In this document: positions 62,502-63,434 of the stretch, one piece after another
Layout: each line of letters begins with the position of its first letter
Position numbering within the stretch: position 1 is the stretch's first letter
Assembly (NCBI GenBank): GCA_965202585.1
Contig: OZ241833.1
Span: 17,794,001 to 17,858,000 of the forward strand
Direction: 5' to 3'
DNA: 64,000 bases
From: Thalia democratica
Lineage: Eukaryota
Translations under genes and position numbers: made by a program
Notes under the pieces: model-generated
Databases searched by the model: none
What the model saw: only the letters and a program-made list of their open reading frames with translations
Told to the model about the DNA's origin: nothing

Positions 62502-63434
62502 ATGTCTAAAATAAAGTCCGTTGATGCGAAAGTTGTGATTGAGTGCGAATATACCACTAGACCCGGTGCGAAAAAGGAGTACCAAAAAATTGTTTCATAC
62601 AGGAGAAGCAAATCAGCTAAGGAGAAAGTAGACCAGTACTCGGGAAGCGTTGAGATCAGCGCCAAATACAAAAACCCAGCTTTTGAGGTTTCGGGTGCCG
62701 TTAAAACCAGTTGGAACAACACTCATTCCTTCTCCACTTCGACTGAAGACGAAGAGATGACTTCCAATGAATCGTTTAAGGAGTATTACGATGACGTGAC
62801 ACTGCTGATCAGATCGCTCAAGTTTAGATATGTCATTGAAGACGTGATGGTTGAAAATAAAGAAGAAGTTATTGTGCTGAATCTAAAAAATAGTTACTCT
62901 GTAGATCAACTTTACCAAGAAGCTAAAAAGTACATGAAAAAGAGGTATGGAGCTGAAAACTCAACAGTTTTGGAAATTCCTATAATACTACAGAAAGAAA
63001 TCTATGTTAAATGGGAAACTTTTAACAGAGGTGACGTCTTACCAAAAAACGCTGTTTATGCAGGCAATACAAGTAGCGACGGCGCTGTATACATTGGACG
63101 AGTAGAAAATACTCCCGGTAAGGTTAATTTAGACGACGGTAAAATATGGAACTATTGGTTACATGGTTATAACAGTAGACAATCGGGTGAAATATTACTT
63201 ACCAACGGTGATTGTAAATGGGTAAGAGTAAAAAGGTACGACGCGTTCCCTAAAAACGCTGTATTTTCAGGACGGGATTACCAGAACGACAAAGTCTGGA
63301 TCGGTAAATCGGTCAGTGGGGAGCCTGGAAAGATAACGTGCGAAAATAATGACGCTACGCCTTCTAAGATGTGGAATTTGTGGACTCACAGCGGGGGTCG
63401 CTCAGAGTTTTGTGAAGTGCTGACCATCACATAA
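62502..63434 (+). CDS. Intronless 310-aa protein: putative beta-pore-forming-like N-terminal domain plus two C-terminal DM9 (DUF3421/natterin-type lectin) repeats
   Basis: Repeats KWETFNRGDVLPKNAVYAGNTSSDGAVYIGRV...PGKV and KWVRVKRYDAFPKNAVFSGRDYQNDKVWIGKS...PGKI fit the DM9 consensus (W...P.NAV.GG...G..LYIGR...PGK). The N-terminus has a Ser/Thr-rich amphipathic hairpin at aa 46-81. No signal peptide. The DM9 call is stronger than the pore-forming call. Confidence 0.85.
   Translation: MSKIKSVDAKVVIECEYTTRPGAKKEYQKIVSYRRSKSAKEKVDQYSGSVEISAKYKNPAFEVSGAVKTSWNNTHSFSTSTEDEEMTSNESFKEYYDDVTLLIRSLKFRYVIEDVMVENKEEVIVLNLKNSYSVDQLYQEAKKYMKKRYGAENSTVLEIPIILQKEIYVKWETFNRGDVLPKNAVYAGNTSSDGAVYIGRVENTPGKVNLDDGKIWNYWLHGYNSRQSGEILLTNGDCKWVRVKRYDAFPKNAVFSGRDYQNDKVWIGKSVSGEPGKITCENNDATPSKMWNLWTHSGGRSEFCEVLTIT

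Follow-up and report, generated by a model that had tools for sequence, protein, structure and literature searches.

Near one end of a 64,000-nucleotide stretch of Thalia democratica DNA (assembly GCA_965202585.1, contig OZ241833.1, positions 17,794,001 to 17,858,000 of the forward strand; hereafter the window) lies an intact gene whose 310-residue product combines an N-terminal module with a C-terminal pair of DM9 lectin repeats. The N-terminal module is a new, unnamed and very small domain family with a defined lectin partner, and the family has most likely moved between giant viruses and a eukaryotic host lineage. Functionally, we tentatively describe the protein as a leaderless, lectin-guided effector, shared by giant viruses and a eukaryote, in which DM9 is joined to a divergent aerolysin-type pore-forming region of the kind found in Clostridium perfringens enterotoxin (CPE) and HA3/HA70, a reading that we judge to be slightly short of probable. 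The relevant features are listed below.

62502..63434, plus strand: complete single-exon coding sequence of the two-module protein, 310 codons plus TAA, without interruption
62502..63002, plus strand: N-terminal module, aa 1-167, of a domain family absent from the catalogues; the prediction is an elongated, beta-rich shape with three helices
62607..62753, plus strand: insertion between strands 2 and 3, aa 36-84, Ser/Thr-rich, a candidate stem loop modelled as helix-strand-loop-helix
62637..62717, plus strand: alternating polar/non-polar segment, aa 46-72, with arm 1 at 46-57, tip at 58-60 and arm 2 at 61-71
63003..63212, plus strand: DM9 repeat 1, aa 168-237, from PF11901, the internal DNA repeat and the CGL1 fold match
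63213..63431, plus strand: DM9 repeat 2, aa 238-310, on the same three grounds
63484..63489, plus strand: candidate canonical poly(A)-signal hexamer, 50 nt 3' of the stop codon
62028..63705, no strand assigned: block alignable to the independent Tara Oceans contig L004 at ~80% nucleotide identity

The gene and its C-terminal lectin domain

The open reading frame (ORF) is very probably a functional host gene. When the window was shuffled 20 times, no stop-free run exceeded 133 codons, as against 310 in the gene, which shows that the ORF is not a chance product; at background composition, the chance of 310 stop-free codons is ~9e-13. An in-frame stop at 62484 lies upstream of the ATG, between it and a possible splice acceptor, and Met1 is therefore the start, whatever stands further upstream. 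The acceptor-like site itself is a pyrimidine-rich stretch at 62470-62486, with an AG at 62478-62479, 23 nt 5' of the ATG and followed by the in-frame stop; it is a candidate that could mark a 5' untranslated-region intron or leader addition. The encoded protein has a mass of ~35 kDa and is leaderless: no leader peptide was found (maximum 10-residue hydropathy in the first 35 aa, 1.13) and no transmembrane helix (maximum 19-residue hydropathy across the whole protein, 1.01). An earlier note on this DNA had reported neither signal peptide nor intron, and both statements hold.

Selection has preserved the gene. Compared with the orthologue-like Tara locus L004, the ratio of nonsynonymous to synonymous substitution rates (dN/dS) is 0.18 at a dS of 0.28, with values of 0.17 for the N-terminal half and 0.19 for the DM9 half, while the flanks have diverged to a near-neutral 80% identity; purifying selection acts on both halves of the gene. 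The L004-alignable block comprises the gene plus ~470 nt upstream and ~270 nt downstream, and a further block at 61072-61442 aligns at 76% identity, suggesting that the window and L004 represent the same locus in related genomes. The ORF has a GC content of 40.6% (42.6% at third codon positions, GC3), and the rest of the window has 26% GC; expressed as fractions, GC3 is 0.43 for the window copy and 0.48-0.52 for the other window ORFs. A foreign composition was rejected, the GC content of the ORF falling within the range of the other window ORFs. The window, which contains no N, holds no second copy of the gene. Hexamers of the canonical type serve as poly(A) signals, and they are frequent by chance in such AT-rich DNA; the one at 63484..63489 is a candidate only.

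The C-terminal half (aa 168-310) is almost certainly a tandem DM9 lectin domain, as the earlier note had proposed. Pfam PF11901 (DM9/DUF3421) matches it in two stretches with 46.6 bits against a cutoff of 26.2, and 18 of the 20 family members match the same entry. The repeats are detectable in the DNA itself (63008-63064 versus 63215-63271, at an offset of 69 codons), and repeat 1 contains the invariant residues W171, P181, G188, R200, P205 and G206. Furthermore, the full-length AlphaFold2 (AF2) model, with a predicted local distance difference test score (pLDDT) of 88.9, matches oyster CGL1 (5mh3, 5idb, 5id8) in Foldseek at a probability of 1.00 and a target-normalised template modelling (TM) score of 0.65-0.70, and the tandem repeats fit the pseudo-two-fold 'N-type lectin' fold of CGL1. 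A family profile run against PDB sequences also gave a weak match to CGL1, there called 'Natterin-3' (E 0.023).

In CGL1, mannose site A comprises Asp22, Lys43 and Glu59, with additional stacking on His52 and Phe126, and a second site comprises Lys114, Glu130, Phe55 and Tyr123 (PMC4932603). These contacts were mapped through the linear, ungapped parts of the profile alignment, which is not a residue-level structural superposition. K207 and K277, in two Pro-Gly-Lys motifs, correspond to Lys43 and Lys114, and the stacking aromatics are kept as Trp (W216/W219 and W291/W294). The positions of Asp22 and Glu59 are occupied by T190 and Y223, with no conserved counterpart in the linear alignment, so that only the Lys is retained among the three hydrogen-bonding side chains of site A, and the ligand may consequently differ from that of CGL1. 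With the Lys and aromatic positions kept and Asp22 and Glu59 replaced, carbohydrate binding by the DM9 pair is likely on sequence grounds and mannose specificity is not established; the assumption of mannose binding made in the earlier note goes beyond these residues.

The N-terminal module and its predicted fold

The N-terminal module is a sequence orphan. Neither Pfam nor NCBIfam has an entry that matches residues 1-167, or this module in any of the 20 family members, and searches against PDB sequences with phmmer and two family profiles returned chance matches only, for instance a PLC-gamma SH2 domain (E 0.11). An exhaustive phmmer search of 1.84 billion representative proteins recovered only 12 relatives, and a second search, seeded with the most distant member, added five more. 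Wherever the sequence is complete, the module precedes the DM9 repeats, of which there are two in most members and four in P0028; this constant pairing suits an effector with a targeting domain. Its invariant residues are mainly aromatic or aliphatic core positions, together with E90 and R104, and no catalytic-looking invariant cluster is evident in the module. The architecture, which the earlier note had not recognised as described, is indeed annotated nowhere; a review of natterins lists no architecture with C-terminal DM9 (PMC8402412).

AF2 modelled aa 1-167 with a pLDDT of 87.2 and a predicted TM score of 0.83, and the elements of the model are as follows.

aa 4-22: strand
aa 25-35: strand
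aa 37-43: helix
aa 46-52: strand
aa 53-62: loop
aa 63-80: helix
aa 85-94: strand
aa 99-112: strand
aa 115-128: strand
aa 134-149: helix
aa 156-166: strand

In a domain of 165 residues, strands of 14-19 residues are of unusual length. Two strands, a Ser/Thr-rich insertion of ~50 residues (36-84) and three further strands follow one another in the model, an order of elements, strand pairing aside, that agrees with the aerolysin pore-forming region (PMC3110756); a helix and one more strand come after them. Additionally, the helix at 63-80 within the insertion (pLDDT 81-92) and the extra last strand at 156-166, both features of a prediction from 20 sequences, agree with the description of the CPE/HA3 subclass, for whose members a helical stem loop has been described and whose families have few members and escape sequence searches for aerolysins (PMC5654971). 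When the model was compared with 350,542 PDB chains by Foldseek, 10 of the top 12 matches were aerolysin-family chains (botulinum HA70/HA3, CPE and a Bombina aerolysin-like protein), at E 0.02-0.12, probability <=0.16 and TM 0.15-0.22; in the full-length comparison, lysenin and CPE recurred at low probability. On the strength of the model, an aerolysin-type fold of the helical-stem-loop branch has about an even chance of being correct for the N-terminal module, and pore formation by it is possible rather than probable.

The segment that would be central to pore formation lies inside the insertion, and its column pattern was computed over 22 family members. Hydrophobic and polar residues alternate strictly at aa 46-57; a variable tip at aa 58-60 holds the indels and Gly or Pro; and alternation resumes at aa 61-71, with two exceptions, to end at the invariant W71. 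Conserved aromatics stand at both ends (Y46/W71 and Y56/F61), the flanks at aa 36-45 and 72-91 are nearly all polar, and Ser and Thr make up 31% of aa 46-90 as compared with 9-16% elsewhere. The position of the insertion and the alternating pattern match the published definition of the aerolysin fold (PMC3110756). In its residue pattern, the segment resembles a stem loop that would turn into a membrane-spanning hairpin with a polar extramembrane stem, and the insertion, at ~50 residues, is of about the right length. Of the alternating polar/hydrophobic hairpin described in the earlier note, the alternation and the Ser/Thr-rich flanks are confirmed; the second arm also fits a helical periodicity, and AF2 places a helix there.

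Several results weigh against an aerolysin-type pore former. The AF2 alignment was only 20 sequences deep, and the five models ranged in pLDDT from 87 down to 58. None of the Foldseek matches of aa 1-167 is significant (best E 0.022, probability <=0.21, TM 0.15-0.22, root-mean-square deviation 12-14 A); unrelated folds (lectins, capsids, CheX/SecB) appear at E-values like those of the aerolysin family, and the viral structures of BFVD yielded nothing below E 0.016. No aerolysin or ETX/MTX2 Pfam match was found at E <= 10 in the 20 members, nor any sequence or profile link to an aerolysin-family entry in Pfam or PDB. The family-mean beta-amphipathic moment of the alternating segment is moderate (1.5-1.95) and is exceeded in the structural strands (aa 10-12 and 159-163). 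A helix suits arm 2 just as well (i+3/4 spacing at 63, 67, 71 and 77), and this is what AF2 models. The replacement of the Asp22 and Glu59 positions, described above, belongs with these points. Finally, we know of no pore-forming activity for HA3/HA70 itself, although it is among the best-matching folds.

Relatives, genomic contexts and transfer

Every relative was recovered from metagenomes or Logan assemblies, for the most part Tara Oceans, and no family member is a named protein in any source searched. The sparse-context members are the window copy, P0001 (L004/L005; 89% identity), P0002 (L023), P0003 (L006), P0028 (L007) and P0013 (L022). On the sparse contigs, the family gene is the only substantial ORF, non-coding GC is 22-24% and ORF coverage is 0.12-0.44. 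The dense-context members are those of L001-L003 (P0008), the P0011 contig, L009/L010/L016 (P0035), and L017-L019 and L025 (P0038), and on complete stretches of these contigs ORF coverage reaches 0.63-0.88. Genes on the dense contigs encode HSP70, RNA polymerase subunit N, a translation GTPase, a Hint domain, Arf/Ras, ATG8, an XRN exonuclease, a Bax-inhibitor, IBR proteins, a Fapy glycosylase, a mitochondrial-carrier protein and a photolyase-related protein, alongside many ORFans. One 20%-GC contig that carries P0008 also contains an ORF of >3000 aa (L001:1-9267, minus strand; annotated product 4918 aa) with no Pfam domain.

The nearest DM9 relatives outside the family, P0016-P0026, belong to the same marine sequence space and are likewise found on dense contigs, with DM9 pairs 53-57% identical to that of the window protein; in these proteins, however, DM9 is N-terminal and is followed by a conserved C-terminal module of ~190 aa without a Pfam match. 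They make up a second DM9 fusion family, also without a name, which occurs on giant-virus contigs (loci L008:10001-10906, L011, L012 and L013), and P0027 has a third architecture, in which another N-terminal region precedes DM9. A domain swap with natterin-order DM9 proteins was rejected, hhalign giving probabilities of 0.1% for the P0016-P0026 module and 0.3% for P0027. P0024 lies on a 300-kb contig, where it adjoins a nucleocytoplasmic large DNA virus (NCLDV) major capsid protein and a poxvirus-type late transcription factor (VLTF3).

An early-promoter octamer is documented for Mimiviridae (PMC5294985), and among its 49 occurrences in ten dense loci, 28 lie in sense and 4 in antisense orientation within 100 nt upstream of ORFs. 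None lies upstream in sense in the sparse loci and the window, where the total count equals the shuffle expectation. The family gene itself has no octamer within 100 nt upstream in any of five viral-type loci (L001, L016, L018, L019 and L025), although its neighbours do, so that it may not be expressed in the early class. A compact-eukaryote (microsporidia) origin of the dense contigs was rejected because the >3000-aa protein and most neighbours lack Pfam domains and the octamer bias is viral. The dense contigs are taken to be giant-virus (Imitervirales-like) genomes, directly for the P0024 contig and circumstantially for those carrying full-length members, and we consider the link of the family to giant viruses quite probable. 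Against this link, the stretches fetched from contigs with a full-length member contain no capsid gene, and a scan of IMG/VR found no relative.

Transfer between lineages was examined with a neighbour-joining tree (200 bootstraps), for which the deepest dense clade served as the root. The deep branches are those of dense-context members, whereas all six sparse-context members fall into one clade, which was free of dense-context members in 174 of the 200 bootstraps (87%). GC3 is 0.11-0.21 in dense-context copies and 0.34-0.66 in the sparse clade, with the exception of P0013 (0.18). This member (L022:3408-4391), in a sparse context and with a GC3 like that of viral copies, may be a more recent or separate acquisition. 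Three family members derive from one sample, and the sparse members include several paralogues. The sparse clade, its GC3, the paralogues and purifying selection together point to long residence and function in a eukaryotic lineage, and, with the virus-context members paraphyletic, transfer from virus to eukaryote is favoured, a direction that we infer under this rooting and with contexts placed for about half of the members.

The earlier note had raised retroposition or horizontal transfer, with reference to intron-rich neighbours. Transfer survives, with marine giant viruses as the probable partner. A bacterial origin was rejected: none of 185,579 representative bacterial and archaeal genomes in GTDB contains a relative, and none was apparent in the exhaustive search of 1.84 billion proteins. 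Mobile-element cargo or retroposition was likewise rejected, since the gene is not flanked by terminal or direct repeats and no poly(A) remnant was found, and a larger endogenous viral insert was rejected because no other ORF lies within >6 kb of the gene. The contrast with intron-rich neighbours is not established, as the sole recognisable neighbour, a trypsin-family gene at 49628-50884 (minus strand), is also a single complete ORF.

Function, rival explanations and known systems

If the preferred reading is correct, the DM9 lectin would dock on a glycosylated membrane surface, after which protomers would oligomerise. Residues ~36-84 would then detach from the sheet and extend as a long beta-hairpin, whose distal part (aa 46-71, with aromatics at both ends) would span the bilayer, while the flanking polar, Ser/Thr-rich stretches would form an extramembrane stem. 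Virus-to-eukaryote transfer would have been followed by duplication and retention as a host effector. In its boldest form, this account would make the protein a new aerolysin-type branch with C-terminal DM9 and the first beta-pore-former-like effector of Nucleocytoviricota, captured, duplicated and retained by a marine eukaryote as a lectin-guided membrane-attack protein, a version about which we are distinctly more doubtful.

The N-terminal module might instead serve as an oligomerisation or scaffold domain that renders DM9 multivalent, as the aerolysin-like region of HA70 does in its trimer. The protein would then be a non-lytic lectin that agglutinates or tags glycosylated surfaces, acting as a host pattern-recognition lectin or as a viral adhesion or surface-modulating protein. 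We regard this as a serious possibility but an improbable one. Stand-alone DM9 proteins are mannose-binding pattern-recognition receptors without a pore module (PMC4932603; see also PMC5712788), and HA70/HA3 chains rank best among the fold matches. The lack of a leader, the merely moderate amphipathic signal and the stable helix that AF2 predicts for arm 2 (pLDDT 81-92) point the same way. The features of the insertion, namely its alternation, Ser/Thr-rich frame, end aromatics and indel-tolerant tip, are nevertheless those usually seen in stem loops and not in a simple scaffold, and CPE, the other recurring match, does form pores and has its modules in this order. A further explanation treats the module as a new fold with a non-membrane function, such as catalysis, nucleic-acid binding or a structural role in the virion, the aerolysin ranking being a by-product of long twisted strands. 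Foldseek scores at chance level (TM ~0.2), the unrelated folds at similar E-values, the lack of a sequence link to any family and the missing early-promoter octamer in five viral-type loci all agree with it. However, three independent aerolysin-family proteins fill 10 of the top 12 places among 350,542 chains, the element order and helical stem loop agree with published definitions (PMC3110756, PMC5654971), and the module shows no catalytic-looking invariant cluster; we consider this explanation unlikely.

It seems very improbable that the gene is a dead remnant of an inserted giant virus, or that contamination or misassembly placed it in a eukaryotic scaffold. The gene is indeed a solitary GC-rich island with no neighbouring ORF for >6 kb, its relatives are viral, and no called gene in the collection searched encodes exactly this protein. 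On the other hand, the ORF is intact, its dN/dS of 0.18 is low in both halves, its flanks align with the independent Tara assemblies L004 and L005, and several paralogues occur in equally sparse contexts. Its codon composition resembles that of the other window ORFs and differs from that of the dense-context copies, and neither another virus-like gene nor a terminal repeat was found around it.

Among known systems, CPE and HA3/HA70 resemble the window protein in layout and size: a long-strand region of ~165-200 aa at the N-terminus precedes a receptor-binding domain at the C-terminus, and the whole comes to ~310-320 aa. The helical stem loop and extra strand of our model agree with the published description of this subclass (PMC5654971), and these proteins supply the top-ranking fold matches. 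However, sequence similarity to them is not detectable, and the Foldseek scores are not significant. CPE carries a claudin-binding sandwich where the present protein has a DM9 lectin, and these toxins come from Clostridium, whereas the family described here belongs to a eukaryote and giant-virus-like contigs. Earthworm lysenin, like the window protein, comes from a eukaryote, lacks a leader and measures ~300 aa; its pore module stands first and a domain that binds carbohydrate or lipid headgroups second, a layout that the window protein may share, and it is among the full-length fold matches (probability 0.18-0.41, TM ~0.2). In lysenin, by contrast, the C-terminal domain is a beta-trefoil, and the stem region is beta in the monomer (PMC5654971), whereas it is helical in our model; there is no sequence relationship, and the window protein was not found to belong to the lysenin family. 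The earlier note had proposed a lysenin-order toxin; the order, a possible pore module and then a lectin, stands, and the beta-pore-former fold is a lead only, the best Foldseek E-value being 0.022.

Natterins share with the window protein a tandem DM9 pair and a second, putatively membrane-active module (PMC8402412). Their DM9 is N-terminal and their C-terminal aerolysin domain is recognisable, in contrast to the reversed order here and a partner without an aerolysin profile match. The earlier description of the protein as an 'inverted natterin' does not apply as a statement of homology: the N-terminal module has no aerolysin or ETX-MTX2 match in Pfam in the 20 members, and the module of the natterin-order relatives is unrelated. 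CGL1/CgDM9CP-1 is alike in the fold of aa 168-310 and in the Lys and aromatic stacking positions, whereas CGL1 consists of DM9 only (143 aa) and is ~20% identical in sequence.

If the N-terminal module is a pore-forming region, it would add a sequence-orphan branch to the aerolysin superfamily, which has been suspected to be larger than sequence searches show (PMC5654971), and DM9 lectins would have acquired membrane-active partners on at least two independent occasions, with the order of the modules reversed between them. Such an effector would also be placed in giant viruses of marine plankton, with nothing comparable in the searchable literature; full-text searches linking DM9 or aerolysin-like pore formers to giant viruses returned nothing beyond one general lectin review. 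The nested clade, paralogues, purifying selection and ameliorated codon usage would then describe a clean virus-eukaryote exchange followed by domestication. Even if the protein is non-lytic, the family offers a new, unnamed and structurally confident domain with a defined lectin partner.

The surroundings of the gene are very AT-rich (window ~25% GC) and poor in ORFs, only 8 of at least 120 aa occurring in 64 kb; the gene lies 566 nt from the window end. Neither tRNA genes nor Rfam matches were found. The remaining recognisable gene is listed here.

49628-50884, minus strand: trypsin-family serine protease, complete single ORF, PF00089 at 149.6 bits

This protease, the second apparently intronless gene in the window, has a hydrophobic N-terminal leader, His and Ser active-site motifs, a C-terminal transmembrane-like stretch and 48% GC. 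Two adjacent ORFs at 54632-54994 and 55029-56129 (both minus strand; 120 and 366 aa) have no Pfam match and are Cys/His-rich, and by eye they look retroelement-derived. The ORF at 9403-11613 (minus strand, 736 aa, GC 44%, no Pfam match) is of Lys/Ser/Asn-rich low complexity and may be a large exon of a disordered protein. A tandem repeat at 61570-61749, with three copies of a 60-bp unit, lies ~750 nt 5' of the lectin gene.

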